In this document: piece after piece, positions 7,051 to 63,590 of the stretch
Numbering within the stretch: position 1 is the first letter of the stretch
Layout: the number at the start of each line of letters is the position of its first letter
Origin: Eutreptiella sp. 'Long Island Sound 2002'
Taxonomy: Eukaryota; Protista; Euglenida
Assembly: GCA_964036045.1 (NCBI GenBank)
Contig: OZ038379.1
Location: 38,750,001-38,814,000 of the forward strand
Length of the DNA: 64,000 bases
Direction: 5' to 3'
Program-made: the position numbers and the translations under genes
Notes under the pieces: generated by a model
Databases searched by the model: none
What the model was told of the DNA's origin: nothing
What the model saw: the letters and a program-made list of their open reading frames with translations, nothing else

Positions 7051-7089
7051 ACCTCCCCCATAGTGTGCTCCACATACAAAATATACAGC

Positions 7090-13579: not shown

Positions 13580-13725
13580 CACATGGCGCTAGAACGCACA
13601 GCATAGAAAGTAAAAAAAGCGGGAAGAAGCTAGGCATTTTGTAGGGGATTTTTTGGAAAGTCTTAGCACTTGTGGTCACCAAATGGGACGCGTATCGCAC
13701 GGTACATTTCAGAAATCAGCAACAC

Positions 13726-13865
13726 AATTTCTTCCGAGATACCCGGGGACGGTTGGCTGGAAAGTCCATAGAACATTCCAAGCGACATTGGCTGCGTTCC
13801 GGGCCCCGAGCTGGCTACCAAAACTTTCGAGCATTTTTCCGGGCAACTTTGAAAACTTCCAGGCG
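13726..13865 (+). repeat. ~140-bp subterminal direct repeat of family B (other copies ~27027-27143, 56341-56480, 61456-61595)
   Basis: AATTTCTTCCGAG...CCAAAACTT(T/C)CGAGC...AAAACTTCCA(G/A)GCG occurs four times, always on the + strand; the 27 kb copy diverges before the last motif. Confidence 0.9.
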
Positions 13866-13869
13866 ATTT

Positions 13870-14232
13870 TACATTGAAATTTGCGACAATGAGAGAGGGC
13901 AATGTTGTCCACCCACATACCTGACCTCAGTAAAGCAATATGCAAAAAAGAAAAGACTATTTGTCCTCAATTGGAACAGTGAATCCATATCCAAAGATAC
14001 ATTGTTGGCAATGCTCATGCCGAAAAAAATTGAAATACCGCTGTTAACCACCAGGGAAGCACGAAACAAGTTATGGCGTGCAAGTATGTACTTTGGGCCA
14101 ACTATCCGCGAGCTGAAGTGGATGCAGAGTGATGTGCAAGGTAAAAAAACTTGTCTTTACTTGTCCCTAAATGGAACTGTGTATGTCGTACTCCCCTTCA
14201 CTGAGCATATGCATAGGACAACCATAACTTGA
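13870..14232 (+). pseudogene. Fragment of an unidentified repeated coding family (family C), paralog of 25804-26208
   Basis: TLLAMLMPKKIEIPLLTTREA...PTIRELKWMQSDV vs TLLAMHMHRNFQIPVLTTREA...PIIRELKWMQSDV. Confidence 0.55.
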
Positions 14233-16658
14233 CATGGCGTCCACATCCAACACCCGTTCCCCTGATTATGTACAGCCGTACGCGGATACTTCTTGGGTTG
14301 CGGTTGAGGTTCAGGGCTATCATGAGATGATCATGAAGAATCTGACCCTGCGGCACTTACTGTAGAGCCGTTAGACATGTACACATCATCATCCTCAAAA
14401 TCATCATTCATCGGACTGCTACTACTCCCGCCGTCACTGCTACAGATACTGCTGTTGGTGCTGTTGCTGCTACTACTGCTATTACTGCCTTTGGGAAACA
14501 CACATTGCTGCTCTATTTTGCTATCAACAATGGGGATGCGCAACAACGTGCAACGTGCCTCACATCACTCGGACCTTGAAAGGAGGTAGCAGTGTCCTCT
14601 ACCTCCGAAGCAGGAACCACAACAACGGAACCTGGGTTAGAATCCACCGGTTTGTGTTTTGGGCCCCACATCACATTTCCCCTTACCCTTTCCCTTGCCC
14701 TTGAGATCTTTACGCCGTGCGGCACAGGATTTGAATTTGGACCGGCTCTTCAAACCCACTGTAGGCCAACTGTGGACAGCTTCCAGCTCAAGAGGGACCC
14801 ATTGAGGTATACCACGCTTTCAGCCACAAATCCTGCGTACACAAACCACATCACTTCCGCGTTCTGCACTTGGAAAAGTCCATTCAACCGAATTGGTTGC
14901 CGGGTGCATATAAAAGCTGCAGCCGCCTGCTCCTTGACAAGTCATCAAGTGCCGTAACAGGCGCCGGAAGACTTTTTGCCACATGGCGTTGGCAGCAACC
15001 AAGCAAGCCTCCAAAAAAGGTTCTAATGGACAAGGGCCCAAATTTTGGCAGTAGGAATCTTCCTTTTCTTGCACAAAAACTTTTCATACCACTCACGCTT
15101 CAAACTTTCACTAATACTGGCATCCCGGCTAGTACTAGTCACGGGGGCATATCTTTTGGCCACGCGGTGATCCCGTTCCCCTGCCTCATCAGAATATAGC
15201 ATGGGCGTCCGCGGGTTAAACCAAGTGTGGGACCACCCATGCATATATAGGGTTGCCGTGCAACCTTCTTGCGCAAATTCCGGAATGATGTGCACAATAT
15301 ATGTGTACACCAAAGCCATGGCTTGCCATGCTGCAATTGCCAATGTGGCGCAACCGTAGCATAGGTCTACTATGGGGTGCAAGGCCAGAACAAGAGAACG
15401 GAAAGGCAATGGGAGGACCATGACCCCCGCCATTCTGCCCATCACAGTGTGGGCCTCTCGGCCCGTTAGGCGGATGCCTGCTTGGAACCTTCCTCGCACA
15501 AGGCGCAAGAGCTCCCTGCTATCAGAAGGCAAAGATCCAGGGTGGTATCTCCTAGCAACTTGAGGTATAACCTTCAACAACTCACGCTTGTACGGCCCGG
15601 GTACGGTCCGCCCAGTAAGACCAAGGAGTCTGGACTCTGCTCCTTTGGTGTTGTGTAATACTGGTTGTATAATATAAATTGTGCCAGGTTAGATACACCC
15701 TTGAACTTGTGGTAACCCTGCACCTCATTTAGACGCCCCCCCCTTGTGCAAAAAGAGTGTGGCAACCCCATGCTTTTTGACCGAGGGACATGCCACGCAC
15801 CCCCTTTGTAGACACTCTAACCACAAATGGTGGTGATCTGCAGTCAGGCAACCAAACTGTAGGTGCAGTGCTGTAGTGTACTCTGCACCACCATACTTCA
15901 TATGTTGCTGGAATTTACACAAAGGCACAGCTAGCAGGGCCTCGGCCCGTTTGGGTAGCCACTCCCCATCAACAACTTTGGGAAATTCCATCCACATTAT
16001 CATGCTGGTGCACCCGGGCACATGGCCAGACCTTGGGAACCAGTCTCCCGCAAAATTGATTGTATAAATCTTAGTGTTAACATTGAGACGCCCCGTGGGT
16101 TGGTATCCATCTGCAAACAGGCCCAAGTTAGGGTGGCTTGTTGGGTTGGGGGGTCCCGGCACCCTTGTACTGCTAGGGTACCGGACTTCTGCAGAAGTAG
16201 ATGGCACAATTCTGCCAATAACTTGCTGTTCCTCAGGGAGTAGTCCACTACCAGAAGATTTAGGAGCTGCTGCTGCCGCAATACCACCATAGGACACCCG
16301 GTAGTTGGTTGGAGGCGATCGAGGGTTCGCAGCACTGCTGCTGGCATAACATGCTCATGCCGCAAAAGCATGGTAGCTGGTGCCGGGGAACTGGACTGGC
16401 GGGGTCGGGTGACAAAGGGCCCATTGCGCGCCGCACAACCCGGACTTTGCGAGTGGGGGGCCGTGGCAGGTTGTCTAGCTCCTTGCTGTCCAAAGGGGTG
16501 GCCCCAGGGAAGTTCAAGATGAAAGCTGACACCATGAACTGGTTGGCATGGACAGGGCAGAGGTTGGCAAACGCCTCTAGTGTGGAAACGTCCCCATTGA
16601 CCCATGCAGCAAAATCGTCCACAATGTACTCATGGTGGAACATTGTGATTTTGCAATA
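14231..16658 (-). pseudogene. Family B transposase exon 2, frameshifted
   Basis: Motifs LGLFADGY (D), LTADHHHLWLECLQRGCVAC (D + CxxC), LYMHGWSH (HxxxH) and LYSDEAGER (E) are spread over several frames. Colinear with 56624-59117. Confidence 0.85.
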
Positions 16659-16693
16659 CTGTGATACGAAGCACGGATGGCGGACATTTTTCT

Positions 16694-16896
16694 AATGCCC
16701 CGACCAGTAGCTGTTACCAGAACCTTATTTTCGTCCAATTGCTCACAGTAGCTCAAACATCTGGTCCCTCCCTGTGTGCTCGACCATCCGCCCCCTAACA
16801 AAGGCCCACTGTTTCAGATTTCTCCCAACCAAGCATTTATGTAATGCCCCAACCAATAGCTTTCACGAGAATGTTTTTTTGGTCAATTTGCTAACA
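16694..16896. repeat. Left remnant of the ~149-bp tandem array, split by the A1 insertion
   Basis: Same unit as 22336-23323 (TGTGCTCGAC...CCGCCCCCTAACAAAGGCCCACTGTTTCAG). Confidence 0.9.
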
Positions 16897-17122
16897 CCCT
16901 TGGTACACGCTAGAGAACCTAATCTCGTTCTAGCCTAGAACGCTCTAGCTAGAACGTTCTAGGCTAGATTAGATCAATAGTAGAACGATACAATGTCTAT
17001 CAACATATCCCAATTTCTTCATTGTTCCGTGCGTGCGTGCGTGCATGCTTGCTTGCTATTGTCGGTAGTGCATTGTTCCATGCTTCCTTCTTTCCCGCTT
17101 AGATATTGCACATTTCGTTGCA

Positions 17123-19119
17123 ATGAAACGCCCCGCCACTACCCCCCTTGCTCCCTCCTCACCCGGGAAGGATACTTCCCTCTTGTCCAAGGCACTACGG
17201 GGGTTGAGTGGGGCCTCAACCCTCAAGGATGAGCGGGTGCGCCATTACTTGGCCCCATGGGCGCTGTCATGCCCCCTAGCACGGCGGCAATTGAACAACG
17301 CCGTCCAACATGTGAACTCCGCCACTTCTACCCAAACCACGGGTGAGGCATGCAAGGCCGCCGTTGAGGCATACGCCGCCTCCCTACTTCCCCCCACCGC
17401 CATGTGTGAACTAGTGCTCAACACGAGGGCCCCCAAGTCGTCGTGGAGGACCCTCTCGGAGCTCTACACGCTCCGTAAGTTGGAGTATCACCGCACCGTC
17501 CCTAGTGGCCCCTACTCCCGGCCAATTTGTACCGAGCGGGCTTTCCAAGCCCGTTGGAAGGAGTTGGTCCCCCCGGTGCAATTGGACAACCCCGTTGCCA
17601 CGGCGTTGCCCAAGGCCACCGGGATCTCATGGCCCTTCGCCTCATGGGTCACATACATCCTCTCCCGGCCGGGCTTGGTGCGGTCAATCAACCGCACCTT
17701 CCCGTTGACGTTCATCGTCCGGGGAGATGCCTACCCCGTGCCCGGGGGCAATTGGACCCAACTCACCATCTCCTTGGCCAACTTCGAGCGCTTGGCCCGC
17801 TCCCCAGCGGGCCTTTGGGTGTTGAGCATGGCCAATTGCGATGACAAGGCCATGGAGACCCTTGCGACGTTGTGGAAGAGCAATTGGAAGGTAGTCCTCT
17901 CACCTAGTGCCTTTTACTCGTTCTAGTTTTGATCTAGTCGGCCTAAAACACCGCTCACTAGACGCTAGATTGGAATAGACTAGAACGAAATTAACCACCC
18001 CCCATGTCTCGTGTTTAGGTGCTTCAAGAGATCATCGACACGGGGCTGGTCCAATGGGGGGCCTCCAAGGAGGAGGCAAAGGTGATCCCTGGGGGGGATC
18101 AACCGTGGCCGCGACGGGTGATCGGGGTGTCCACATGCCCCCAAGTGGGCTCCATGTTCAATGAGGGCATATGGAATACCCCAACGAAGACTTGGGAGGG
18201 TAGTGCTAACCCCTGGACGATGGACGGTGATGAGGCCAACTACACGGCCTTCCTCCTTGGGACGCCATCCTTGCAAGCCGCCGGCTGCAGTACGCAGCCC
18301 ATTTTGAAATTGCCACGTGCCTGGGTCGTCTTGTGCATTTTGCACTTGACAATGGCCATGGGCCGCTTGTTGGGTGACTTTCCCGATCGGGAGGCTAGGT
18401 TGGTCACCCCTGCGCTCCGTCGAGACCTGCAAGTTCTCCTGTCGGAGAGGCGTGCAGGTTGGAGCGTTTATGGGTCAGCATCCCCAGATGGGGAGGTGAC
18501 GGCCAATTTTTTTGACGCATGGCCGGATATTGCTAAGTGCCTCCGCATTAGGCCAAGCACGGCCAAGTACAAGGCCATTGCGAACATGTCGGACCTGCTG
18601 CAGGCCCTCTATTGTACATATCAGGGCCCTAACCCTTTGAATTCTGCTGCTGTTGCCCGCGATTTCCGGCGACACTGCACTGCTGGAACAGCATCATGGT
18701 ATCTACTAAGCCTTGAGCAGGATGTAGATACCACGTTGCAGAACATTAAGCCTTTTGGCCTAGCTATGTTCTCCGGTGACATTTCGGAAAGCATTAACCG
18801 CTTTCTGAAACATGGTCACAACGAGCACATCAACCGGGGGGGGGGGGGGGGCTGTCGGGTGGAGGGGGTGGACGAGGTGTCGGGTCCTCAATTGTCGGCC
18901 ATCCACAGGGAGGCCAATGTGCAAGCGCAGTGCATGACATGGTTGTTTGCGTACTTGGACGTGTCGTGGGTTGTGCATGGGGGGCCACGGTCGCAAGTGC
19001 CATGCTCAGGCAGGGATGCCATGGAGGTAAGGAGGGGCCCGGGTCACATGCAGGCTTCCCGTAACCAGAATTTTGCAATCCAAGATGGCTACGCGGGAGC
19101 AGTTGGACGAGCTCGTTAG
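17123..19119 (+). CDS. Spliced DDE transposase of RAG1/Transib/CMC fold (exons 17123-17890 and 18019-19026 or 19119)
   Basis: GT-AG intron 17891-18018 joins the ORFs in frame. Motifs: FIVRGDAY (D, codon 17726), PGGDQPW (D, 18097), LCILHLTM (like RAG1 DALHCDI) and LAMFSGDISESINRFLK (E, 18787; like RAG1 IGAWASEGNESGNKLFR). Confidence 0.85.
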
Positions 19120-20990
19120 GCAGGTATATTTCGTGCTGTACGTTCTAGCGGTGATCTAGGGAATCGTTCTAGTCTTGATCTAGGCAGCACGATCGGCCGT
19201 TAGACTGTCGCTAGAACGCCGCTAGAACATTTGCCTAGAATGCCGCTAGAACGCTCCTGTGCTACACAACGCAGCGACCCAAGCGCTGATTGCGCAAATA
19301 CTGGAGGCGGAGAGGCGTGCAGCGGAGGAGCCGAAGGCCTAGCAGGCCCCGCACCCCAAAGCCCCCCTCGCCAAGGCCAAGCCCAGACCCAAGCCCCAAC
19401 CCCAAGCCCATCGTCCACAGTCGCCACCCCCTCCCCCATTGGTAGCCCGGAAGGGGGCGGCGGCGTTGGAGGAACCGGCAGAGGTGGAGGTGGCGCGGGG
19501 AGAGCTCAAAGGGTTCTTGGATTCCCGCGCCGCCTCTAGGGCGGCCAACACCCGGGCAGAGACGAAACTCTCGGCCTGGGAGGTAAAATTACGGAGCCTC
19601 GTGGAGGATGGAGCGGAGGAGGAAAGGGTGGAGTGGGCGGAGGCCAACCTTCGCAAGGCGAAGGCGAAGGTGACGGAGAAGGCGGCGGCGGTGGAGGGGT
19701 TCGAGCGGGCGGTGAGGCATTGCGAGAGGCAGTTGGCGGCGGTGGTGGCGAGGGTGAAGGACGAGGAGGTGGACGAGGTGGTGGAGGTGGACGTGCAGGG
19801 CGAGATGGAGGAGGAGGCGAGCGTGAAGGATGAGGAGGAGGAGACCAAGGTGGTGGAGGCGGCGCCGGCGGGGGGGGGGGACGAGCGACTGGCTCAGGGG
19901 GTTGATGGGGTCGAGGGCTGCGGGGGCCCTCCAGGACCTGCCATGGGACCCGGCAGTCCTGGCTGGCACCCACCCCCCAAACCCGGACACCCCCCTCGTC
20001 GTCGCCCCGGAGAGTCCGGTATGGACTCTCCGGTTTTTGTTGGTGCGGGTGCACCACCGGCTGTTGGGGGCGGGGCTGGGTATGGGTGGACAGGGGGGGG
20101 GGGGTTTGTCCACCTGGACGAGCCCCTGCGCCTGGGGTGGTCGAGGGGTCGTGGGGGTGGCAACGTGAGTTGCCAGGGCAGGGGAACAAGGGGTGGGGGG
20201 GAGCCCCCCCCCCCCCCCCCCGAAAGGCGGGTGAAGATGTTTGAGTTGGCGCAAACCAACATCTTCAGCCCCGAGCGGAAAAAGGGGGGGGCAACCCACT
20301 GGCGATTCGTCGCCCACTGCTGGCAGGGGCGGAACTTGAGGGGGGTTGAGTGGGTGGGGAAGGCCTGGGTGTGGACGCCGACCTGGTCGGCGCTGCTGGA
20401 CATCAGGGGTTTCAACCCCGAGGCGGCGAACCGGGGGGTGTATGCCGGGGTGGTGCACGGCATCGCCGGCCGGCCCAAGCCCAAGCCCAAGCCCGCCGCA
20501 GCCCCCGCTGGCGGCCCCCGGCAGCCGCACCCCCCCAACGCCGCGGACGCCTTCGCCAAGGCACTGGGGGCCATCCCCCCCGCCCTGGACCACCAAGGCA
20601 CGGTATGTCAATTGCGTTCTAGCGTTGATCTAGCAAACCGTTCTGGCGCTGTTCTAGCCACTGCCGTACCGCCGCCGCTAGAACATCGCTAGAACGTCGC
20701 TAGAACAGTTGCCTAGAACGCCGCTAGAACGCTCCTGCATTTTGCTCTTCACGTTGTCAACGTGCAGACGTGTGGAGGCGACCCCCGCGGGGTGCGCGTG
20801 GAGTGGCGCGATGGTGGAGGGCGCACGCGCCTCATGGGGGTCACCGAGTTGAGCTGGATCTTGGGGACAAACCCCAATTTGGCTCTCTCGGTGTTGGAGG
20901 GTTTGGGTAGGTGGGAAGCGGGCAGGAGTGCGGAGGGCATGGACCCGCAGCGCAAGGGCTGGGCCAGGTTGCAGGACTGGGGGAAGGATG

Positions 20991-21023
<33 letters not shown>

Positions 21024-21738
21024 CCAGCACCAGCAGCGAGGGGAAGACACCCCCCCCAAGGCCCCCAACCTCCCCCCCCAATGCCCCCAAGAAAAAACCC
21101 CGCCACTTCGAGAGTAGCGACAAAGAAGAGCCCCCCCCCCCCCCCCCCCCAAGCCCAAGCCCAAGGCCAAGCCGCACGCCAAGGGCAAGGGCAAAGCCAC
21201 CCCCCCCCCCAAACCCTAGCCCCCCGCTATGCAAGAAAGGGGCCGGGACCCCTATGGGAATGTGCCGGGTGTGGGGGACACCCGGTATGTCCCTTGGGCG
21301 GAGGGGGGCAATGGGGGGACCGTCAGCCAAGTGACGGTGTTGGGGGATTGGGAAGAGGAGTTTGACCCGCAAGAGTGGTGGGTGGTGTCGCAGGGGTCCA
21401 ATGGGGAGGGGGAGGGGGGGAAGAAGGGGAAGAAGGGGAAGAAGAGGAAGCGGGAGAAAGAGGGGGGCACCTTCCGGGTGGCAGGGGACCTCCTCTTCCT
21501 CACCCGGGAGGAGGCGGAGGCCCAGCTCCGGGAGGCCTTGGAGCCCGGGGACCACGGGGACGACGGGGATGACGAGGGGGACGAGGGTGGTGACAAGGGG
21601 GAGGGGGGTGACAAGGGGGGTGAGGCGGGGGGTGACAAGGGGGGTGAGAAGGAAGGGGACACGGGGGGTGGGGGTGAGAAGGGGGGTGCCGGGAGCAAGG
21701 ATGAGCCCCGGCAACCCCCCACCACGCAGGAGGGGTAA
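19085..21738 (+). CDS. Spliced low-complexity extension or second ORF of A1 (coiled-coil/acidic, Pro-rich, poly-Ser, Lys-rich, GGD/E repeats)
   Basis: ORFs 19439-20692, 20762-21334 and 21229-21738. GT-AG intron 20603-20767 joins the first two in frame. One in-frame TAG near 19337 and frame changes inside poly-G/C runs. Confidence 0.5.
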
Positions 21739-21779
21739 CATGCGTGTCGCGACTCGCGAATGGGGGCCGGGGGGGGCAG

Positions 21780-21905
21780 GGGGGCTAATTGGGCTAACCG
21801 GGCTAATCGGGCTAACCCACCACCATGTGATCCGGCGCCGGCCCGCCAAGTGACCTTCCAAGTGACCTATGGGGTGCGGTGGGGGGCTAACCGGGCTAAC
21901 CGGGG
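21780..21905. repeat. 9-bp GGGCTAAYY micro-array in the A1 3' region
   Basis: GGGCTAATT-GGGCTAACC-GGGCTAATC-GGGCTAACC, repeated again at ~21884. Confidence 0.7.
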
Positions 21906-22335
21906 GGTGGGGGGGGGGGGGGGGACCCAGCGCTCTGTGAGTCGGGTCCAGCATCGGGACCCTGTGATTGGCCACGGCTGGCCATGGTAGCCGGGGCAGC
22001 TTCTCTTTGAGGAGTGGCGGAGCATTCATATATATCGTTCTAGCGGCGTTCTGGCGAACCGTTCTAGCGGCGTTCTAGCGGCGTTCTAGAATGCTCGCTA
22101 GAACGTCGCTAGAACGCCACTAGAACGAAAAATTTTTGGACTCCAAAATCAGGTGAAAACAGTGAAATTGTGAAAAAGAAAGTATGGGCCCCCCAGTATG
22201 GATAGGGGGGTCCAGGTTGGACACCTCAATCCCCCCCCTGCGGGGGGGGGGGGTATCCCCCTCTTTTTTTCGTTCTAACCTCTCTAGCCTGTTCTAGGCT
22301 AGAACGAGATTGGGTATTCTAGCGTGTACCAAGGG

Positions 22336-23323
22336 CAATAGCTCACAGATCTAGTCTCTCCAAGTGTGCTCGACTACCCGCCACCTAACACAGGTCCACT
22401 GTTTCAGATTCCTCCCAACCAAGCATTTCTGTAATGCCCCGACTAGTAGCCTTCACCAAAATGATTTTTTGGTCGAATTGCTCACAATGCCTCAGAGATC
22501 TGGTCGCTCCAAGTGTGCTCGACTACCCGCCCCCTAACAAAGGCCAGCTGTTTCCGAGTCCTCCAAACCAAGTATTTCTGTAATACTCCGACGAGTAGGT
22601 TTCACCAGAATGTTTTTTTGGTCGATTTTGCTAACAATAGCTTTGACATCTGGTCGCTCCAAGTGTGCTCGACTACCCGCCCCCTAACAAAGGCCGACTG
22701 TTTAAGATTCCTCCCAACCAAGCATTTCTGTAATGCCCCGAGCAATAGCTTTCATGAAAATGTTTTTTTTGGTCAATTTGCTCACAATAGCTCAGAGATG
22801 TCGTCCATCCAAGTGTGCTCGACTATCTGCCTCCTAACAAAGGCCCACTGTTTCAGATTCCTCCCACCAAAGCATTTATGTAATGCCCCGACCAGTAGCC
22901 TTCACTAGAATGTTTTTTTGGTTGATTTGCTCACACTGGGACAGAGATGTGGTCGCTCCAAGTGTGCTCAACTATCCGCCACCCCCAAAAGGGCCCACTA
23001 TTTCAGATTTTTCCCAACCAAGCATTTTTGTAATGCCCCGATCACTAGCCTTCACTAGAATGTTCTTTTGGTTGATTTGCTCATAGTGGCTCAGAGATCT
23101 TGTCACTCCAAGTGTTCTCGACTATCCGCCCCCGAAAAAGGGCCCATTGTTTCAGATTTTCCCCCACCAAGCATTTTTGCCATGCCCCGACCAGTAGCTT
23201 TCACCCAAATGTTTTTTTGGTCGATTTGCTCACAGTGGGTTTCACCACAATGTCTTTTTGGGCGATTTTCTCACAATGGCTCGGAGATCTGGTCCCTCCA
23301 AGTGTGCTCGACTATCCGCCCCC
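22336..23323. repeat. Tandem array of 149-150-bp units (~6.6 units), within the predicted family B intron
   Basis: CCAAGTGT(G/T)CTC recurs at 22360, 22509, 22659, 22809, 22958, 23108 and 23298. Confidence 0.95.
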
Positions 23324-23899
23324 TTTCACACAGGCACACAGACACACAAACAGCAAGAGAGGTAGAAGATGACATCCGCACGTGATTCGTTGTACATGGG
23401 ATATGACCATTGTGCACCATGAACTCATAAAATACATTACCCTGACTCCCTTAACTCCTTTGGATCAGAACTCATAACATATAGAAGGATGAAAGAATAA
23501 AAGTATGTATTAATCTGAGTCCTCTGACTCCTCCGGCTTTGACTTATGCGACCCTGTGTTTTGGGTGTGTGCAGGGACAATAAGAAGGATGAGCTCTCCC
23601 TCACCAGATGGGCTCCCATCCAGTAGGGGACATCTAGGACTTGGGGACGGTGCCCCGTGCCCATGACGTACTCCATGGCTCCATCCGGGACTTGGGGCGG
23701 TGCCGCGTGCCCCTGACGTAGTCCGGCACTGTGCGAACCGACGTCACAATCCTAAGTGGAAGGGACCCCTCTAGCCTCCCGCCCTTCCCCCCATGATGAG
23801 TAGGGGATGGGGGCATCTGCCCCCTTCTTCTTCTTCCCGTGCCTGGTTGCTGAGGCCCTCTTCCTCTTCCCGCTTCACCCCTGTAGATGACACCCGGGC

Positions 23900-26208
23900 A
23901 TCGGGGTTAGACTCACACTCAGACGCAAACTTAGTCTCAGGGGGAGGGGGGGGCGGTCGCGTTCTGGGGGGCATCACAAGGATAACCATGTTCCTCGCGA
24001 GGGGGGCTGACGGCACTGGCCGTTTGCCCCCCCACACGTGGCAACTCCATAGCCACCTTTGCGAATTCCTTCAACACAATGGAGGCCCACCCCGTGCGCC
24101 CAAGGGCAACGTTCCCGGGTGTTGCTACCCAGGATGCTGCCTGATCAAACATGGCCATACACTCTCTCCCTAGCATGGCAAAATTTTCAAGAAGGGGGGT
24201 TTATCCCACTCCCTTGTGGGGTGTTGCAGATGCCTCGGCAACACCCGCAGTGCAATATATAAACAATTTTCTTGACTGCAGTGCGGGGGGCTCGTGTGAA
24301 GGGCAACTGCAACACTCCGTGCGCGCAACCTCACGCAAGTTGACTGAGGCATTAGGGCCTGCCAAATCATAAATTTCACCCCTCCTTGCGTGCACAGCAA
24401 CAACAATGCCGTGCAACCCCCCCCCACCAATCACCTCCCATGTGCCAAAAGGAGGGAGAGTGGAGGCAAGCATTTTGGGCAGGAGGGACTTGAGGAGATG
24501 GTGCTCTTTGCCTTCTGCCCATGGGGCACGCATCTGCACCGGCATCCCCTTTGCCTTTTTGCTGTGGGCAGTGGTAGTGTGCCTTAGCCAGCGCTCCTTG
24601 CCCTTGAGGCCAACCCCCCCTTGCCTGTTCCCCCCGCACATCTCCCGCACCCGCTGCTCTGCGGCCTTAAACTTCTTACCGTCCTCCACGAACTTCCCCC
24701 TCGGTACCCTAACCTGCTCAGCTGGTTGCCTAAACTGCACCCAATCATGCACCTCGGCCGTGACCCACAAAGAAAGAACAAACCCCGACGCGATTGTTCC
24801 CAACGGCGGGCTTCAGCAGGGCCACGGGAAAGGCGGGGGGAGGACCCCAAATTTTTCAACCCTCCCTAGCGTTGGCTTAGTGGTGATGGCAGCCTTGGTC
24901 TGCCAGGCCACCTAGGGGGTTTGGACGTGGCCTGGATTGCCACCCAGTTCTTGCTCTTCTTGGTGAAGAGGTGCAGGTAGTACTACACTTGCACTGCTGC
25001 CACGGCCACGCCCGCCCGTGCCGCCACCAATGCTGCTGATGCTGACGCTGCTTGAGCTGCGGCCTCCTCTAGTGTTGTTTCTTCTCGTGCTGCTGCTTCT
25101 CTTGCTGCCGCCGCTGCTGCTTCTTGTGCTGGCGCCGCTGGTGCTTCTGGGGCAGGGGGTGCCCATAGGGGGGCTGACATCGACGGCGATGGGCATGAAG
25201 ATGCCGAGGGCGATTGGGAAGCGGCGAGCATGCAACCGGAATAAATTGTGGGCCTTGCGCCAGCAGCAGAGGTGGAGCGCGCAGCCATGGCAGCTGAGAT
25301 AGCAGACATTTAGAAACATTGTCCTACCAAAACGGTGCCAAAATAGTGCATCCTTTTGGGGGGGGTGGGGTTACAGGGACTGAAACAAAGACACGCACTT
25401 ACCCTGTGGCTGGGGATGTGGACTGTTCACCCTTGGCTTGCAACCACGAGCCCATAACGGACAGTTTCACCCGTTTCGGTGCGGACTGGTTTGGCTTTGC
25501 AGCGGGGGCCAAAGAAAACTCTATACCCCACAGGGGGCCACAGGGGTGATATGTCGGTTTAGGTCTGTTCTGAATACTTCGCCCTCGGGGGGGGGGGGGG
25601 GGCACCACTTTTTCCCAAACCCCCGACGGGGCCTGGTCCCGTACCCGTCACCCTGAGTCTCCCCCATCACCTCATTAACATGGGTGCCACTGATAGGGGC
25701 TTTCAACGCACTATGGATGGTCGCGTGTGGTGCTTCGCAGAATGTCATTTATGACGACCTTTAACCCTTCAAAGGGGCTGTGTATAAAAGAGAGGGGGAG
25801 AAACTATTCATTACAAGTGATAGCTTTTTTACCGCGCTTTTTGACCTTGGCATTTTTAAACCAGGATAGCACATCACTCTGCATCCACTTCAGCTCGCGA
25901 ATTATTGGCGCAGGGTGGGTTGAAAGTACAAACTTGAGAAATTTATAGTGGTCACGGAGCCGCTCATTTCCCTCTTCGGCAAACGTGTGCTCCGCGTTAC
26001 ATTTGGGGTCAGGGCCAACTATATAAAGATTCCTATAATGTATGCCGTAATTTGTTTCGTGCTTGGGGGGAGTCGTCTTGCCGACAGCTTCCCTGGTAGT
26101 TAACACCGGTATTTGAAAATTTCTATGCATGTGCATGGCCAACAACGTATGTTTGGTTGAAATGGCATACTGCTTAGGTGTGACCGTATCTAAAAAACCC
26201 CTTAACAT
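23900..26208 (-). pseudogene. Decayed coding insertion (family C), possibly transposase-derived
   Basis: 25804-26208 is paralogous to 13870-14232 and is followed by a QGDGYG motif and further broken minus-strand ORFs. No complete catalytic series or termini found. Confidence 0.35.
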
Positions 26209-26283
26209 TCGGGGGTCGATTGTCTATGACGGCTTATGCCTCAAACATAGTGCCGCCAAGGCATGTTGAAGCCGGGACTATAC

Positions 26284-26406
26284 GTCCCCGGGTTAGGGTA
26301 ATTCCACATTGACGACATCAGCATCAACCATCTCTGCCTCAAACTCCAAACTTCCTCCGTCCTTGGGGCGCGAAGAGGATACATTGGTTTGGCTGGCGTT
26401 CGACAT
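26284..26406 (-). pseudogene. Family B copy 1 putative first coding exon
   Basis: MSNASQT...LEFEAEMVDADVVNVELP*PGD resembles copy 2 MSNSQGS...LELEGELIDADTANTEVPEPGNPG; GT donor candidate at 26283. Confidence 0.55.
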
Positions 26407-26479
26407 GTCTATTGCCAATGCCAGGGCCAAAAGTGCAACGTCACACAAGATCACAAGGTGCAGAGAGGCGCAACCAACA

Positions 26480-26960
26480 CCATGTGCAATTGACAATGGC
26501 CGCAAATCTTGTTCACAATTATTTGTACGTATCAGGACTGGTACGCAAGGCATGTCAAAGCAAAGAAAGAAGGAATGCCCCAAAATGCTTCCTTCTCGAG
26601 CCGGGGAGTAGCTCCAGGCAAGGATCTTCACTTGTCTTACCGGATTTGGCCTAGTGTTATCTGGCATAGGACACTGGCATCTATGGAGTGTGCAATTGGC
26701 AAGGAACACAAGTCTTGTTCACAAACATTTGTAAGTGTCTGGAATGGCACGCAAAGCACGTGAAAGCAAAGAAAGAAAGAATGCCCCTAATGGCCTCCTT
26801 CTCGAGCCGGGGAGTAGCTCAAGGCAGGGATTTTCCCTCGTCTGGCCGGATTGGGCCTAGTGTTCTCTGGCATAGGAAACTGACATCCACAGAGTCTGCA
26901 TTTGACAATGGACACAGGACATAAATCTTGTTCACAAATATTGTTCATGGCCCACCTTGC
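26480..26960. repeat. ~210-bp tandem repeat (about 2.3 units)
   Basis: TCTTGTTCACAA at 26507, 26713 and 26926; TTCTCGAGCCGGGGAGTAGCTC occurs twice. Confidence 0.85.
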
Positions 26961-27639
26961 AAGCAAAGCAGGCACCAAGCATCCAACTAAACATCCAATA
27001 GGTTGAGGTTCCACAAATGCCATCAAAATTTCTTCCGAGCGTTCCATGGAACCTCGGCTAGGGAGTCCTTAGAAGATTCCAAGCGATATTGGTTGCTTTT
27101 TGGGGCTCGAGCTGGCTCCCAAAACTTCCGAGCGGTTTTCCGGGGGTCGTACCCCCCCCGTATCTAAAATGGGGGAAGCGACCCCAGCGAAGCATATCGC
27201 ACGCACCTCGCCGGGTATCCCCCAAAATTGCCCCCGGTGAACAATATTGCTCTCTCTTGCAATGTTCTATGCTAGGCACCGGTGGTACATGTATGGCAAT
27301 GTCCATAGCTCAACGCAAGGCGATAGTGCATAGCCGACGAACAACATCGTCCATGTACCAACCCCGCAACTCGGTGGTGGAAGCCTTTGAGGGATTGCCA
27401 CGACAAATGTGACACGTCTCGTCTACCTCAGAAGCATCATCCTGTGTGGGCACTATATGGGGTGCGCAAACACGCATTCGGCCAAAAGAATGAGCTTTGG
27501 CTTATTCTTCTCCAAGAACACTCATATAGAGGGGTGTATTTCGAGATTCGGCCAGAAGAGTGAGCCACAGGTCATTCTTTTTTCATTTCATTGTTTTACA
27601 AGGGCACCCGTGGCAGGAAACTTTGCAAAAAAATTCAGG

Positions 27640-55967: not shown

Positions 55968-56623
55968 GACTACGTGGGTGAATGGACCACGGTGCAAGTG
56001 GCACGAAAGTAAAAAGAAATGAAATGCTTTGTGTGGTGCATGTTTTGGTGTGGCAGGGAAAACATGCGGGTTTTTTTTCCAAAACGGCCCATGTTGGCGG
56101 CTTCGCCCTAACACCCCATTGTTTCAAATCAAGCCGAAATCTTGATTTTTGAATTCTTCACGTCCAAAATAGGGGGAGGTCAATTTTTCAATCATAACCG
56201 TATCAACAACATGGAGAAAATCCAAAAATGGCCGAACGCACATGGTGCTGGGACGCACAGCATAGAAGGTAAAAAATGGCAGGAAAATGCTGAGCATATT
56301 GCTCAGGATATTTGGGGTTGATCTCGGAAAAAACAGCCAAAATTTCTTCCGAGCTCCCCCGGCACGGTCGGCTGGGAAGCCCATGGAACATTCCTACCGA
56401 TATCGGTTGCGTTTTGGGACCCGATCTGGCTGCCAAAACTTCCGAGCATCTTTCCGAGGGATTTCAAAAACTTCCAGGCGTTTTTCCATCGGTTTTTTGT
56501 ACGATGAACTACACCGTTCTTGGTTCCCAAATCCCACACCTCAGCAAAGAAACACACACAAAGACAAGCATGACCGTTCACTTACGCTTGAAATGTGAAT
56601 GCTCAGTGGCTTGCCTGTTCATT

Positions 56624-56864
56624 TCAGCTTGAACTGTGAATGCGGTACTCTCCTTCGCTGAGCATCTGCACAGGACAGCCATCGCTTGACATGGCATCCA
56701 CATCCACCACCACACGGCGATACTTCTTGGGTTGAGGTTGCGGTTCAGGGTTGTCACTGGATGATGAGGAAGAATCTGAGGCACTTACTGTGGAGGCACC
56801 AGATAGGTGCACAGCATCATCATCCGAATCATTATCCTCAGGACTGCTACTGCCCCCACTATCA

Positions 56865-56911
<47 letters not shown>

Positions 56912-59122
56912 ACTGCTGCTACTGCCACTGCCACGAGGGCACACAAGTTGCTGCTCAATGTCGCTATCAACAATGGGTACACGCGCCAACTTCGTACGTC
57001 TCATGGGTTGAACACGCTGCTGCTCGTTCCAACCCGTAGGACCTTGAAATGAAGCAGCACTGTCCTCGCCCTCCGAAGGGGGTACAATATCAACTGTCGC
57101 AGGAGTAGAAACTCTGCTTTGAGGGATGGGCCCCACACGTCCCTTACCCTTTCCCTTGTCCTTCAGCGCCTTACGGCGTGCAGCACAGGACTTAAATGTG
57201 GCACGGCTCTTCAAACCCAGTTTGGGCCACTTGCAGACAGCTTCCCTGTCCAGTGGTACCCATTGACGGACACCACGCTTTGAGCCACAGGTCCCACACA
57301 CACATACCACATCACTCTCAAGATTTGCACCTGGAAAGGTGCATTTCACCGAACGGGTGTCTGGGTGCATATATAGGGAGCAACCACCTCCATCCTGGAA
57401 ATGCAGCAAATGCTCTAAGAGGCGTTGGAAGACCACATGCCACACGGCATTGGCAGCAACCATGCACGCCTCCAGAACAACGTTTCGTTGCACGGGCGCC
57501 CAAATTTTGGCACAGGGGATCTTCTTTTTTTTCTGCACGAACTTTTGATACAGCTCATGCTTCAAACTTTCACTAATACTGGCATCTTGCCTGGTACTAG
57601 TGACGGGGGCATATCTCTTGGCCACCCTGAGATCCCGCTCGCCGGCCTCATCGGAATACAGCATGGGTGTCCGTGGATTAAACCATGTGTGGGACCACCC
57701 ATGCATATATAAGGTTGCAGTGCAACCTTCTTCAGCAAACTCGGGGATGATGTGCACAATATATGTGTACAACATCCCCATAGCTTGCCATGTGACAGTT
57801 GCCAGGTTATTACAACCATAGCATAGATGCACCATGTGGCAAAATGCCACCACCAAGGAATGGAAAGGCAGGGGGAGCACCATACCCTGCTAGTCCGCCC
57901 ATGACTGTGCGAGCCTCGCGACCTGTGAGGCTAATGTCTGCCTGGAATCTACCTCGTACGTGACGCATGTGCTGCCTGCTATCAGGTGGCAAAGATCCAG
58001 GATCATACCTCCTTGCCACATGTGCTATGACCTGGAGCAGGTCATGGTTGTAGGGCGCTGGTAGTGTTCTACTTATGACACCCAGGATCCTGGAGGCTGC
58101 TCCTTTGGTGTTGTGCAATACAGGTTGCACAATATATACCTCTTCCAGGTTAGAAACCCCCTGAAACTTATGGGACCCACGCACACCATTGAGACATCCC
58201 CCTTTGTGCAAAAAGAGTTCTCCCGCCCCATCCTTATTCACCCAGGGACACGCCACACAGCCCTTTTGCCGGCACTCAGACCACAAATGGTGGTGATCGG
58301 CAGTGATTGCCCCGAGCCTTATCTGCAGGGTGGTGTTGTACACTGCACCAGCATACTTCATACGTTGCTTAAATTTACAAGAAGGTAGGGCTTGTAAGGC
58401 CTCTGCACGTTTGGGTAGCCACTCGCAATCACTGACCTTGGGAAGCTCTTGCCAGGTCAACATGTCTGTGCACCTAGGCACATTGCCAGACATTGGGAAC
58501 CAGTGTCCCTGGAAATCAATTATACTGATTTTTGTGTTAATATTTGGACGGCCCCGGGGCTGGTAACCGTCTGCGTAGAGGCCTAAGGTGAGGGTGGCAT
58601 GGGGTGGTGGGGGTTTCTGCCGGCCTTGGGCAGCCAATGAGCCACACTTCTGTAGAAGTAGGTGGCACAGCTGTGGTAACAACTTCCTGTTGTCCAGGGA
58701 GTAGTCCACTGCAGGAAGATGCAGGTCCTCCTGTTGCCTTAAAGCAACCATTGACCAACCAACCCCTGGTTGGAGATGGTCTAAGGTGCGCAAGACAGCG
58801 GCTGGCACCACATGCTCATGGCGAAGGCGAAGTGCAGCAGCCTGGCACTCTGGTGCTTGGGTGACTGATGTGGCCTGTGTGGTAGGCAAAGGGCCAAGGG
58901 ACCTACGCACAACTGTGAAGGTGCCACTTGGGGGGCGCTGTAGCTGGTCTAGGTCCTTGGCCTGCAAGGGGGTGGCCGTGGGGAAGTTCATGGCAAAGGC
59001 TGACACCATGAATTGATCAGCTGGAATAGGGCATATGCTGGCGAATGCCTCCAGCTTGGAGATCTCCCCCTTCACCCATATAGCATGGTTGTTCACAACA
59101 AATTCATGGTGAAACATGGTGC
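56624..59122 (-). CDS. Family B transposase main exon (one frameshift near 57885)
   Basis: ORFs 57810-59117 and 56624-57883 give LGLYADGY (D), ITADHHHLWSECRQKGCVAC (D, CxxC), QPVLHNTKG, LYMHGWSH, LYSDEAGERD (like Transib SEEAQE), then a CVCGTC cluster, a basic KGKGKG stretch and a poly-Ser tail. Acceptor TCTTCTGTTTCCCAG ends at 59123. Confidence 0.85.
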
Positions 59123-59142
59123 CTGGGAAACAGAAGATTGCA

Positions 59143-60857
59143 GTAGGCCATTGTTTTGCTTGGTTTCAAAGGAACCATGTATGGAAAGCCCCAACCAGTA
59201 CCTTTCACTAGAAGCTTGAATTGCCAGGATTGCTCCAACCAGTTTGGAGATCCAAGGGTCCAAAGTGTGCTCGACTATCCACCCCCTCCCTCTGCACCAC
59301 TGTTTTGCTTGGTCTCAAAGGAACCATGTATGGAAAGCCCCAACCAGTACCTTTCACCACAAGCTTGAATTGCCAGGATTGCTCCAACCAGTTTGGAGAT
59401 CCAAGGGTCCAAAGTGTGCTCGACTATCCGCCCCCTCCCTCTGCGCCACTGTTTTGCTTGGTCTCACAGGAACCATGTATGGAAAGCCCCAACCAGTACC
59501 TTTCACTAGAAGCTTGAATTGCCAGGATTGCTCCAACCAGTTTCGAGATCCAAGGGTCCAAAGTGTGCTCGACTATCCGCCCCCTCACTTTGCGCCACTG
59601 TTTTGCTTGGTTTCAAAGGAACCATGTATGGAAAGCCCCAACCAGTACCTTTCACTAGAAGCTTGAATTGCCACGATTGCTCCAACCAGTTTGGAGATCC
59701 AAGGGTCCAAAGTGTGCTCGACTATCCACCCCCTCCCTCTGCACCACTGGTTTGCTTGGTCTCAAAGGAACCATGTATGGAACGCCCCAACCAGTACCTT
59801 TCACCACAAGCTTGAATTGCCAGGATTGCTCCAACCAGTTTGGAGATCCAAGGGTCCAAAGTGTGCTCGACTATCCACCCCCTCCCTCTGCGCCACTATT
59901 TTGCTTGGTCTCAAAGGAACCATGTATGGAAAGCCCCAACCAGTACCTTTCACCACAAGCTTGAATTGCCAGGATTGCTCCAACCAGTTTGGAGATCCAA
60001 GGGTCCAAAGTGTGCTCGACTATCCGCCCCCTCCCTCTGCGCCACTGTTTTGCTTGGTCTCAGAGGAACCATGTATGGAAAGCCCCAACCAGTACCTTTC
60101 ACCAGAAGCTTGAATTGCCAGGATTGCTCCAACCAGTTTGGAGATCCAAGGGTCCAAAGTGTGCTCGACTATCCACCCCCTCCCTCTGCACCAGTGGTTT
60201 GCTTGGTCTCAAAGGAACCATGTATGGAAAGCCTCAACCAGTACCTTTCACCACAAGCTTGAATTGCCAGGATTGCTCCAACCAGTTTGGAGATCCAAGG
60301 GTCCAAAGTGTGCTCGACTATCCGCCCCCTCCCTCTGCGCCACTGTTTTGCTTGGTTTCAAAGGAACCATGTATGGAAAGCCCCAACCAGTACCTTTCAC
60401 CCGAAGCTTGAATTGCCAGGATTGCCCGAACCAGTTTGGAGATCCAAGGGTCCAAAGTGTGCTCGACTATCCGCCCCCTCACTCTGCACCACTGTTTTGC
60501 TTGGTTCCAAAGGAACCATGTATGGAACGCCCCAACCAGTACCTTTCACCACAAGCTTGAATTGCCAGGATTGCTCCAACCAGTTTCGAGATCCAAGGGT
60601 CCAAAGTGTGCTCGACTATCGGCCCCCTCCCTCTGCGCCACTGTTTTGCTTGGTCTCAAAGGAACCATGTATGGAAAGCCCCAACCAGTACCTTTCACCA
60701 GAACCTTGAATTGCCAGGATTGCTCCAACCAGTTTCGAGATCCAAGGGTCCAAAGTGTGCTCGACTATCCGCCCCCTCCCTCTGCGCCACTGTTTTGCTT
60801 GGTTTCAAAGGAACCATGTATGGAAAGCCCCAACCAGTACCTTTCACCAGAACCTTC
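59143..60857. repeat. 149-bp tandem satellite, ~11.5 highly similar units, inside the predicted intron
   Basis: CCAAGGGTCC at 59252, 59401, 59550 and onward. Shares cores (GTGTGCTCGACTATCCGCCCCCT, CCACTGTTT, CCAGTA(C/G)CTTTCACCAGAA) with the 22.3-23.3 kb array. Confidence 0.97.
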
Positions 60858-60863
60858 ATTTGC

Positions 60864-61020
60864 CCGGATTGCCCGGTTCGGGAACTTCGGTATTGGCTGT
60901 GTCCGCATCAATGAGCTCGCCCTCAAGCTCCAAATCTGGTTCCGGGACCTGCTGAACGGGCTGGTGGGGCTGAGCGGACGAAGACGAGGCACTAGCGGCA
61001 CTGCCTTGACTATTAGACAT
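60864..61020 (-). CDS. Family B copy 2 putative first coding exon
   Basis: MSNSQGSAASASSSS...EVPEPGNPG. A phase-1 GC donor (G|GCAAAT) at 60863 joins in frame to the acceptor at 59123. Paralog at 26284-26406. Confidence 0.55.
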
Positions 61021-61684
61021 GTCTCTTGCGGGTGACAAAAAGTGTTCTGAGCACAAAAAGGGAATACATTAGTGAGTCTACTCAAAGGGGCCTAGGTGAG
61101 AAAGCGACACACATGCAAAAAGACAAACCACAAAAGCAGGCACAAAGCTTCACAAGGGACAAAGGGCAAACATTCATCAGCTTGAGTACAGTGTTCTCGA
61201 TGCAAGTTTGTAGGCAAAGCACCCACCAAGGATCAAACTGGCGTTGCACATGTCAAAAGCAAAAGTCCAAATTCACAAAGGAGCACAAAGGGGAAGCAAT
61301 CATAAGCTTGAGCACAGTGTTCTCCATGCAGTTTTGTAGGCAAAGCAGACAAAGGGTAGACAAACATTAGCTTCAACGTGCTGTTCTCCATGGCATCTTG
61401 CAGGCAAGGTAGGCACCAAGCATCCAACCAAAATTCCACTGGGTTCGGGCTGAAAAATTTCTTCCGAGCTCCGCCGGCACGGTCGGCTGGGAAGCCCATG
61501 GAACATTCCTACCGATATTGGTTGCGTTTTGGGACCCGATCTGGCTGCCAAAACTTCCGAGCATCTTTCCAAGGGTTTTCGAAAACTTCCAAGCGACAGA
61601 CCGAAGCATATTGCATGCACGTCGGTACAGATTTCCTAAAATTGCCACCTGTAACCGGACAATATTGGTCTCTCTTCCAATGTT

Positions 61685-63590
61685 CTATGCTGGGCACCGG
61701 TGGTACATGTGGTGTCGACTTTGCGTTGTTTTGGCCCAATTCAAATCCCCCCCCCCGCCCCCTGCAAAACGCCCATGTCGAACATATGAGACAACGCCTG
61801 CATACACTCCACTCGACAACCATAACAATGTACTACGCTGCCAAACACACCGTGTCCGCCCTTTACCTGGACAGTGCAACTGTCGTAGGCTTGACACGGC
61901 GCTATGGGCAGCATGTGCATACATTGCAAACCTTATATCACTGGCGACGATGCTACACACAGAGCATCATGAGCCGCGCGTTGGACTGGACCTTCCGCAT
62001 GCAGCTGGCTTCTCAAGCCCACCGGGCAATGCACTATACGACACCACATGACACCCGATAAGACGACAACTTGCACCGCAAACGACCTACAGAGGAATGG
62101 GACCTCAATGCCTGGGACATTCCACTCCAACCACTACCCAAGAGACTCAAGGCACGCCGGGATCCCAATGAATGGGAAATTTAGGCGTCAAACCACGAAC
62201 GCCCACGAGCAACAAAATTTTCAATTTGTGGTACACGCCCTCCGACACTTTGGCCTTTGCAACCAGCTCCTGTCTCTCAGGAAAGTCCATGTGGCAATAT
62301 AGAACACCTACAGGAGTTTTCCCATGGACTTTTGTGATCATGACATAAATCCACTAGGCCCTGTAGTGGTGTTGCAAGAGGTCTAGCAGGGCGGAATTAA
62401 TATTTTTCCATAATTCTGAGACACGCAAGCTGATTTTGACAGGCTTAAGGGCTCTATAGTTACGTCCATCCCGAGTTTTTTGGTCCAGATACTCATATTG
62501 ATATGTACCAACAAGGTGCAAAATTTCACCGTCCGAGAAGGCTAGGAAGGCGTTGACCAATGCCTGAAGGGTATGACAGAGGAGCAAATCGTCTTCAGAA
62601 AATTCGAAATCTTTTTCGCCGCGATGGAGTTCATCAAGCATTTGCTCACGCCGTGCGGCATCTATGGCCTGCATCATTCCCTGTCTCCTAACCCCCTTCA
62701 CGAATCGATAACCCCTCGACTCCACCATTTCACATGGTCGGGGGCTCCTTTTCTTTGCACTACGGCTTCGGGAGATGTAGAGCAATCGTTTCCTTGGAGA
62801 AGGGGATTTGCTTGAAGAAGGGGAATGGGTGGCCATCAGAGAAATCAAAGAAAACAAGGGAAACTTTATGGGGAGAACAAGCAAGGCAGAACAGTGCACA
62901 AAATCCTGCAGAAAAACCCTGCAGAACGTCGAAAAGTTCGGCCCCGTTACTCAAAAATATGGTCTCCTTCCCCACCCCCCTAACCCATACGTCTTTGAAA
63001 CGGCCTTTTGTTGGGGGTTTCGAAAAGGTATAACATACACCACCCCCCATGGAACGATATTTTTGAGAACAACGCACGTGTTGCCAGCCCGGAAGGTGAC
63101 CAAGGGCGTTGCATCCACAATGTCAACACGAAGCCATACTTGAGTAGCAGACACGCATAGAAAGGGGCTTGATCTACAGGCAAGTAAGCACGTGGAGAAT
63201 GACAACGCAAGATTGTTGAAGACAGATACCTTGCCACAACCCAACGCATAGCCATGCAATAGTCCTTAGCCGACCAAGAATATCGTCCATGTACGAGCCC
63301 TGCAACTTGGTGGTGGAAGCCTTTCAGGCATTCCCACGGCAAAACGAATACACCACCGTGCCGGCCGTGCAGGGCACGCGGCAGAAGTCGGTGGCCTCGG
63401 GGGGGGGAAGCCACCACCGGTGGATGTGCGGAGTGAGGCAGGCATCCGCTCTGGCCGCCTCGGCGGTGGGCCCCACGTGCGCGTGGTCGGTGGGGGTCAG
63501 AAACAGACCCGCAGACACCCCCTCTTGCAGGAGGAGGACGTCCCCCATGTAGGGCACCGGGGGGTCCAACGGCTGCTCAGCCTGCGACAC
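61685..63590 (-). pseudogene. Decayed coding region; 63000-63345 is the uninterrupted paralog of the site hit by family B copy 1
   Basis: YMDDILGRLRTIA...ICLQQSCVVILHVLT matches 27294-27400 joined to 13540-13581; PLVTFRAGNT matches PFVTFLAGNT at ~13450. ORFs 62354-62899 and 62147-62341 share a frame across one stop. Confidence 0.55.

Follow-up and report, generated by a model that had tools for sequence, protein, structure and literature searches.

In the 64,000-nucleotide window analyzed here (contig OZ038379.1, positions 38,750,001 to 38,814,000 of the forward strand), the segment 56239–61711 is probably a non-autonomous, frameshifted deletion derivative of a recently active cut-and-paste transposon of about 9 kb, which would represent an uncatalogued lineage of the CMCT clade (the broad CACTA–Transib assemblage that also holds RAG1) and would be carried by a protist containing chlorophyll a and b. 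RAG1 is the antibody-gene recombinase, and an earlier note on this DNA had described the segment (copy 2 in the following) together with a second copy in the window (copy 1) as a RAG1-core-like transposon family with ends built like recombination signal sequences (RSSs). Twelve loci encoding relatives of the transposase of the family were retrieved, all of them from one ENA assembly, and the ends, the coding regions, the insertion sites and the predicted fold of the transposase were compared with those of known elements. Coordinates given without a locus name are positions in the window, and the features are collected in Table 1.

Termini and architecture of the element

All four ends of the two window copies were confirmed in the sequence at the places where they had been reported, and each of them has the proposed layout of a terminal CACATG (TACATG in one case), 14 bases and the 9-mer AGCATAGAA. 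When up to one mismatch was allowed, the pattern CACATG-N14-AGCATAGAA had 4 matches in the window vs. 0 in 100 shuffles. Related loci (L001–L011, 11 loci) provided 17 further ends, each assignable to a left or a right type, and the spacing did not vary in these other copies either, as all 17 keep 14 bases between the blocks. Over the total of 21 ends, the tip is CACATG...CATGTG at 19 and AACATG or TACATG at the remaining two. The 302 kb examined contain 18 occurrences of the exact 9-mer (approximately 2 expected), all of them at positions 21–29 of an element end, with one per end and no subterminal array. In run X3, where the window flanks are present without any difference, 15–16 contigs of the same species depart from the window sequence at precisely 56239 and 61711 and have unrelated continuations; the termini are therefore exact, and the element was not found to extend past CACATG.

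The spacers read G[C/T]GCT[G/A]G[G/A]A[C/T]GCAC in left-type ends and TACCACCGGTGCC[C/T] in right-type ends, and the two types are indeed unrelated to each other (5/14 positions equal, which is chance level). Within one end type the spacer sequence is conserved, with 0–3 changes between subfamilies, and conservation reaches over ~38–55 bases per end (89–94% between subfamilies vs. ~71–75% DNA identity elsewhere in the elements); the conserved stretch amounts to ~55 bases at each end and not to the 29 bases of the first description. The term "length-conserved spacer" is not supported by these data: the spacers are conserved in sequence within each end type, left vs. right is a single comparison of length, and since a constant length follows from the conserved sequence itself, it is no evidence of selection on length. 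The end-specific conservation suggests that the spacers discriminate left from right or bind another factor. The right end (61683–61711; L010 914–983) is rich in dyads: the spacer contains CACCGGTG, the partner of this sequence (ACCGGTGG) follows ~42 bases more internally, and CAATATTG is located between the two; a short GTGC...GCAC dyad is present in the left spacer.

Intact copies of ~9.0 kb were found at L008 896–9914, L010 914–9922, and L011 53–10077. Read in gene direction, they consist of a right-type end, a subterminal repeat, a region designated gene 1, a 149-bp satellite, the transposase frame, the subterminal repeat again, and a left-type end. Copy 2 is 94.5–96.7% identical to the intact element at L010:914–9922 and lacks the reference positions 996–4332 (gene 1 region); contigs in 4/4 runs depart from the window at the corresponding breakpoint (60872) with one common continuation. 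In the intact copies (P0183, P0257), the transposase is encoded by a single uninterrupted, intronless frame of 827–830 residues, shorter than the ~880 residues assumed previously, and this frame is broken in copy 2 by the loss of 2 bp after 57884, a place where all aligned contigs have an extra CC.

The gene 1 region contains ~3.2 kb of conserved coding sequence. Its open frames of 380, 567, and 196 residues follow one another, each in a different reading frame, and represent either several genes or a single gene with introns or frame changes. The region is conserved in both subfamilies (tblastn). The three frames overlap slightly (L010 1724–4928), an arrangement that, judged from the frames themselves, suggests introns or programmed frame changes. 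The claim that the family has no partner gene is true only of the deleted copy, whereas the autonomous copies carry gene 1; the claim that there is no RAG2-like partner stood, in so far as RAG2 is a Kelch-repeat propeller with a PHD finger and the open frames of gene 1 had no Pfam match, including Kelch and PHD. Feature searches with gene 1 returned weak and inconsistent leads that were not relied on (cysteine-protease/deubiquitinase-like for the 567-residue frame and MBD/homeodomain-like for the 380-residue frame, scores ≤ 0.68). A Kelch-repeat gene located 1.4 kb upstream of a 5'-truncated copy (L009 4306–5097) was considered as a RAG2-like partner and was rejected because it lies outside the truncated element. 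On its downstream side, the same copy is followed by a long tandem array in which 191-residue frames recur (L009 10241–16484).

Mobility, target sites, and host

Eight complete copies were found, each in different flanks. At 90% identity, the intact protein falls into a cluster of 157 members, several of which have full-length frames at separate loci, and copies are 94–98% identical to each other (2–6% difference). The ratio of nonsynonymous to synonymous substitution rates (dN/dS) is 0.155 between the two subfamilies, at a synonymous divergence (dS) of ~1.1, and 0.47–0.74 within the young subfamily, as expected for copies decaying after insertion. Contig depth at the end regions is several-fold above that of the transposase region, and a joined form (56454 to 61414, ~0.5 kb in total) was detected in two DNA runs, with only 28 bases on the shorter side of the joint; as contig depth is not copy number, this is a hint only that many short non-autonomous derivatives exist. 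The runs that contain the element comprise estuary metagenomes and three coded organisms.

None of the eight complete copies is flanked by a target duplication of 2–9 bp, which agrees with the earlier observation on the window copies that a 5-bp duplication is missing (0/8). In 7/8 copies, the base outside the left tip is the same as the base outside the right tip on the same strand, and the exception is the old copy 1, the tip of which is also mutated. When the boundaries were shifted by 1–4 bases, single-base matches were obtained in 0–3 of the eight copies, and the chance probability of 7/8 such matches is roughly 0.0004 to 0.001. Going by the flanking bases, a target duplication of 1 bp would fit, and blunt insertion between two identical bases would fit too. 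The term "1-bp TSD" (target-site duplication) was not found in the literature. The length of the duplication varies even within Transib (5 bp, 3 bp, or TA; bioRxiv 10.64898/2026.08.26.747230) and therefore does not settle the placement of this element.

A non-animal host, proposed earlier as a possibility, was confirmed by a contig of the same assembly (L012) on which a diverged family member is accompanied by tandem chlorophyll a/b-binding genes, and the host, a chlorophyll a/b-containing protist, is probably a euglenid. The tandem array (L012 16966–21001, minus strand) has at least six chlorophyll a/b-binding protein units and recalls the light-harvesting polyprotein genes of euglenids. In the L012 subfamily (P0050, 39% protein identity), eleven direct copies of a TTTTATGATGGTAGAGCA motif flank the transposase gene (9098–9845 and 12749–13522), with microsatellites beyond them. 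The termini of the L012 element were sought for a comparison of the block spacing in this diverged subfamily, and none could be fixed.

The transposase and its placement

The motifs D..D-CxxC..H..HxxxH..E that had been read from the window are genuine, as they are invariant in members only 35–40% identical. In P0183 numbering, D183, D274, C287, C290, H335, H473, H477, and E491 are invariant in four full-length members that are 38–73% identical, and the same eight residues are conserved in an alignment of 18 sequences. H275-277, D490-E491, and a C-terminal CxCxxC are likewise invariant across the diverged branches. As modelled, the transposase has an RNase H fold carrying a DDE triad (D183, D274, E491), and its zinc module consists of C287, C290, H473, and H477, plus H335. 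A tyrosine-recombinase element (DIRS, Ngaro, or Crypton-like), which the direct repeats and the missing duplication might suggest, was ruled out because the only large conserved protein is this DDE enzyme.

At the level of sequence models, no match of the transposase to RAG1, Transib, or CACTA was obtained. Pfam had no match at E ≤ 10 for the window frames, the intact proteins or 18 diverse members, and the Transposase_21, Transposase_24, DUF4218, and Plavaka domains were specifically without a match in these 18 members at the same threshold. Two family profiles (one of 102 sequences) searched against PDB sequences (E ≤ 10) retrieved no RAG1, BbRAGL, HzTransib, or other transposase. An exhaustive HMMER search of 1.8 billion representatives returned 304 relatives, and the best 150 of these 304, which are mostly fragments from a library without names, include two full-length branches only 34–39% identical (P0036, P0040). 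The matches listed by word-index searches were unnamed ENA proteins or carried no name, a search started from P0036, the full-length member with the greatest divergence, recovered nothing beyond the cluster of P0036 itself and a single neighbour, and JGI metagenome contigs gave no match with either the left-end pattern or a four-sequence profile.

Structure prediction with AlphaFold reached a predicted local distance difference test score (pLDDT) of 33 with a shallow family alignment of 19 sequences, and yielded a usable model after diverged HMMER fragments had been added (pLDDT 74.7, predicted template-modelling score 0.71). In this model, D183 closes strand 1 of the RNase H-like sheet, and D274 comes after the long fourth strand. 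The closest solved structure to the modelled transposase is the RAG1 core. In the Foldseek search of the PDB, RAG1 chains occupy the first 41 places (best E 2e-6, probability 1.0), with BbRAGL at 7e-4, HzTransib at 1e-3, and Hermes and the P element above 0.04, while VIA-align against the PDB gave RAG1 a Z of 11.0 over 361 residues (model 92–518 on RAG1 467–974; noise ~4.7), followed by BbRAGL (8.5), the P element (8.4), and HzTransib (8.2). Among the Swiss-Prot models, Foldseek placed RAG1 of eight species in the lead and hAT-derived proteins next. The predicted fold is superposable on the RAG1 core from the dimerisation/DNA-binding domain (DDBD) through the ZnH2 domain. This fold (DDBD, pre-RNase H, RNase H, ZnC2, ZnH2) is matched by the model, though not exclusively, as Transposase_21 and Plavaka models match too: the shape search in the ESM Atlas returned two Transposase_21 (CACTA) clusters (template-modelling scores, TM, of 0.41/0.43 and 0.39/0.50) and one Plavaka cluster, and in a feature search, Transposase_21 and Plavaka clusters appeared next to RAG1 at scores of 0.85–0.86 throughout, to be taken as leads only. 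Against AFDB clusters, the best Foldseek matches were uncharacterised eukaryotic proteins (best E 8.5e-9), with one DUF4218 and one "Transposase domain" protein lower in the ranking.

The CMCT clade comprises EnSpm/CACTA, Mirage, Chapaev, Transib, Plavaka, ESTA, Lanisha, and RAG1 (Kojima 2025, PMC12730594), and is characterised by D, D, and E together with two C and three H (Figure 4 of that paper), by 5'-CA..TG-3' termini and by duplications of 2–5 bp. All eight signature residues are present in the transposase described here (the triad of D, D, and E, one H, a C(2)C that follows the second D, and an H(3)H that precedes the E), and the element shares the 5'-CA...TG-3' termini and the cut-and-paste habit with deletion derivatives. 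In contrast, it has no detectable sequence similarity to any named member, its duplication is apparently 1 bp and not the 2–5 bp quoted for the clade, and it occurs in a euglenid-like protist; no description of such elements in this group was found in the literature. The order of motifs had previously been taken as diagnostic of RAG1/Transib; it is the signature of the whole clade (PMC12730594), and therefore does not point to RAG1/Transib in particular. The EnSpm-like ESTA group is reported to match RAG1 by HHpred as well (PMC12730594). Because there is no sequence-level tie to any catalogued family, we consider the element a separate, uncatalogued lineage of the clade; the evidence places it in the broad CACTA–Transib assemblage and not specifically beside RAG1/Transib. 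To our knowledge, RAG1, RAG-like proteins, and Transib are the only CMCT members with solved structures, and no CACTA-type structure has been solved; with these as the sole solved members, a RAG1 lead among solved structures is expected for any CMCT enzyme.

It is unlikely, in our view, that the family is a true member or a sister of the Transib/RAG1 lineage, with ends that are RSS-type signals and an RSS-style recognition older than animals. In an RSS, the spacer is variable in sequence and fixed in length (12 or 23 bp), whereas the spacers of this element are equal (14/14 vs. 12/23 or 23/23), conserved in sequence and specific to each end, so that neither a 12/23 asymmetry nor an independent constancy of length can be claimed for them. 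The layout as such is similar. The tip starts with CAC, and CACATG[G/T] shares CACA with the heptamers of Transib and RAG1 (CACAATG and CACAGTG; Kapitonov & Jurka 2005, PMC1131882), a second conserved block of 9 bases follows at a fixed distance, once per end and without subterminal arrays, and it starts at position 21, compared with position 20 for the nonamer of the 12-RSS, i.e., about two helical turns from the tip. The block itself does not resemble an RSS-type nonamer: AGCATAGAA equals the RSS nonamer ACAAAAACC at 3/9 positions and the consensus Transib nonamer AAAAAAATC at 3/9, and has one of the two critical A's (PMC1131882). With regard to the protein, RAG1 is the best solved-structure match (Z 11; structures of the Transib and RAG1/RAG-like group are 6pqn, 6b40, and 6xny) and the match extends beyond the RNase H core (RAG1 467–974), yet the score of HzTransib does not exceed that of the P element, the ESM Atlas contains CACTA-type and Plavaka models with a similar level of match, the shared motifs are clade-wide (PMC12730594), and similarity to RAG1/Transib Pfam models or PDB sequences is missing even with the 102-sequence profile. 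The absence of a 5-bp duplication is a further difference, one that is tempered by the variation within Transib (bioRxiv 10.64898/2026.08.26.747230), and the second gene of the element is unlike RAG2 in being without detectable Kelch repeats or PHD finger (Pfam). Of the proposal of a RAG1/Transib-related family there remains a DDE transposon with a predicted fold closest to the RAG1 core among solved structures, and its "RSS design" is a resemblance of layout only; residues common to the whole CACTA/Transib group would not establish a specific ancestry link to V(D)J recombination.

It is quite unlikely as well that the family belongs to CACTA/EnSpm (CMC proper) as a far-diverged member, i.e., as an ordinary CAC-ended element beyond the reach of Pfam. 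Such an element would have the CAC...GTG termini, the subterminal repeats, the second coding region upstream of the transposase, and the large autonomous copies with many internally deleted derivatives that are seen here, and its predicted shape would be similar, given the Transposase_21 clusters among the nearest ESM Atlas shapes, the DUF4218 and "Transposase domain" proteins among the AFDB cluster matches and, as leads only, the Transposase_21 and Plavaka entries of the feature search. It would also be expected to differ from what was found in several respects: none of the 18 members matches Transposase_21, Transposase_24, or Plavaka, the 3-bp (2–4 bp) duplication is absent, the tip is CACAT and not CACTA/CACTG, the 9-mer is single at each end as opposed to the arrays of subterminal binding motifs in CACTA, and the subterminal repeats of the two ends have the same orientation instead of an inverted one. 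That the two blocks are leftovers of an ordinary long inverted repeat after drift, with a bipartite look and no function, is highly improbable, for although left and right ends allow one comparison only and their spacers agree at chance level, the ends are better conserved between subfamilies than the rest of the elements (see above), and an identical 6-mer and 9-mer around 14 unrelated bases are hard to get by drift alone.

We return to an uncatalogued CMCT lineage as the preferred reading, against which several points have to be weighed. The TM-scores of the structural matches are low (0.3–0.5), and the likeness comes from whole-fold alignment, not from an overlay of catalytic residues; the lead of RAG1 in the PDB ranking is partly a sampling effect. 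The status of a separate lineage would follow from sequence searches without a match and not from a tree, and the 1-bp duplication from eight copies, all at filled sites. Evidence of transcription is weak, as one metatranscriptome, which may contain DNA, covers the transposase frame partly and without informative splice joints. What chemistry the cleavage follows, which factor binds the 9-mer and what the spacers do are matters of inference.

In the mechanism that we propose, the enzyme would cut at the CAC tip, and a second DNA-binding part, for which the N-terminal domain (residues 1–72) and the C-terminal CxCxxC module are candidates, would read the 9-mer two helical turns inside. The end-specific conserved 14-base spacers together with the next ~25 bases would tell the left from the right end, and integration would be nearly blunt, with one base duplicated. 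The complete scenario, in which a RAG1-fold transposase of a euglenid-like protist reads a CAC tip and a 9-mer two helical turns inside, in the geometry of the 12-RSS, with end-specific spacers and a single-base duplication, is speculative and has a low probability in our estimate. The end-specific spacers and the single-base duplication are the features most deserving of test.

Copy 1, neighbouring features, and implications

Copy 1 is the decayed and older of the two window copies (Table 1). Compared with the open frames of L010 (tblastn), its gene 1 remnants are 59% (g1a), 36% (g1b), and 46–51% (g1c) identical, and gene 1 thus appears to have evolved unevenly between the subfamilies (first part 59%, middle 36%, vs. 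~70% for the transposase). Its subterminal repeats (13723–13845 and 27024–27146) show ~76% identity, both within copy 1 and between the copies, vs. 95% within copy 2; the pattern in copy 2 would be compatible with a recent duplication or with conversion between the two repeats of a single element. On the right side of L010, an additional tandem copy of the subterminal repeat (~156 bp) is present.

The element nested in copy 1 (16897–22335) is 5.4 kb long and has open frames of 267, 366, and 417 residues, none of which gave a profile match to the transposon family of copies 1 and 2. In the 267-residue frame, hhalign placed the stretch LTFIVRGDAYPVPGG, without significance, on the first-D motif of the family, and the nested element may encode another CACTA/Transib-type transposase. 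Elsewhere in the window (8028–9000 and 29470–31984), there are a 15-bp CA-rich minisatellite (~41 units) and ~195-bp tandem repeats starting with G-runs, both unrelated to the element.

Table 1. Coordinates of the two transposon copies in the window, their ends, coding regions, and repeats
Feature	Position	Strand	Remarks
Copy 1: 13.7-kb decayed copy, older P0001-like subfamily, with a nested foreign element inside	13580..27293	-	~71% DNA identity to the young subfamily
Left-type end, copy 1	13580..13608	+	
Transposase remnant of copy 1, several broken frames	14174..16881	-	71% identical to reference positions 5833-8573
Foreign element nested in copy 1 satellite, outside the transposon family	16897..22335	.	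Without counterpart in the intact element; 59-nt inverted arms
Gene 1 remnants, copy 1: g1a 25426-26328, g1b 23972-24911, g1c 23513-23888	23513..26328	-	tblastn with L010 open frames
Right-type end, copy 1, TACATG replacing CACATG	27265..27293	-	
Copy 2: 5,473-bp derivative of the ~9-kb element with an internal deletion; minus-strand transposase gene	56239..61711	-	Alignment to L010:914-9922
Left-type end, copy 2: CACATG, spacer GTGCTGGGACGCAC (14 bases), AGCATAGAA	56239..56267	+	Downstream of the transposase gene
Subterminal 142-bp direct repeat, left copy	56339..56480	+	95% identical to 61454-61595, same orientation
Transposase gene, copy 2, two overlapping frames 57810-59117 and 56624-57883	56624..59117	-	Frameshifted; intact version P0183, P0257
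149-bp satellite array, ~12 units	58998..60937	.	In intact elements between gene 1 and the transposase start codon
Internal deletion breakpoint, gene 1 removed	60872	.	Position 840 of the reverse-complemented copy
Subterminal 142-bp direct repeat, right copy	61454..61595	+	Partner of 56339-56480
Right-type end, copy 2: CACATG, spacer TACCACCGGTGCCC (14 bases, palindrome CACCGGTG inside), AGCATAGAA	61683..61711	-	

For any CACTA/Transib-type enzyme, "RAG1-like" motifs and a RAG1 top match in the PDB are expected, which calls for caution in the interpretation of similar findings. With the family described here, the transposase assemblage from which RAG1 arose would gain an uncatalogued lineage of recent activity, and this lineage comes from a branch of eukaryotes in which such elements are barely described. 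If true, the 1-bp duplication would be an unreported integration geometry for eukaryotic DDE transposons, and if the lineage were sister to Transib/RAG1, the recognition of signals by two modules would predate the animals. Natural intact copies (P0183, P0257) with short, sharply defined, asymmetric ends make bench tests possible, and the testable questions are whether a non-animal RAG1-fold enzyme reads a tip and an inner block, whether the spacing of the blocks is important, and what geometry gives a single-base duplication.

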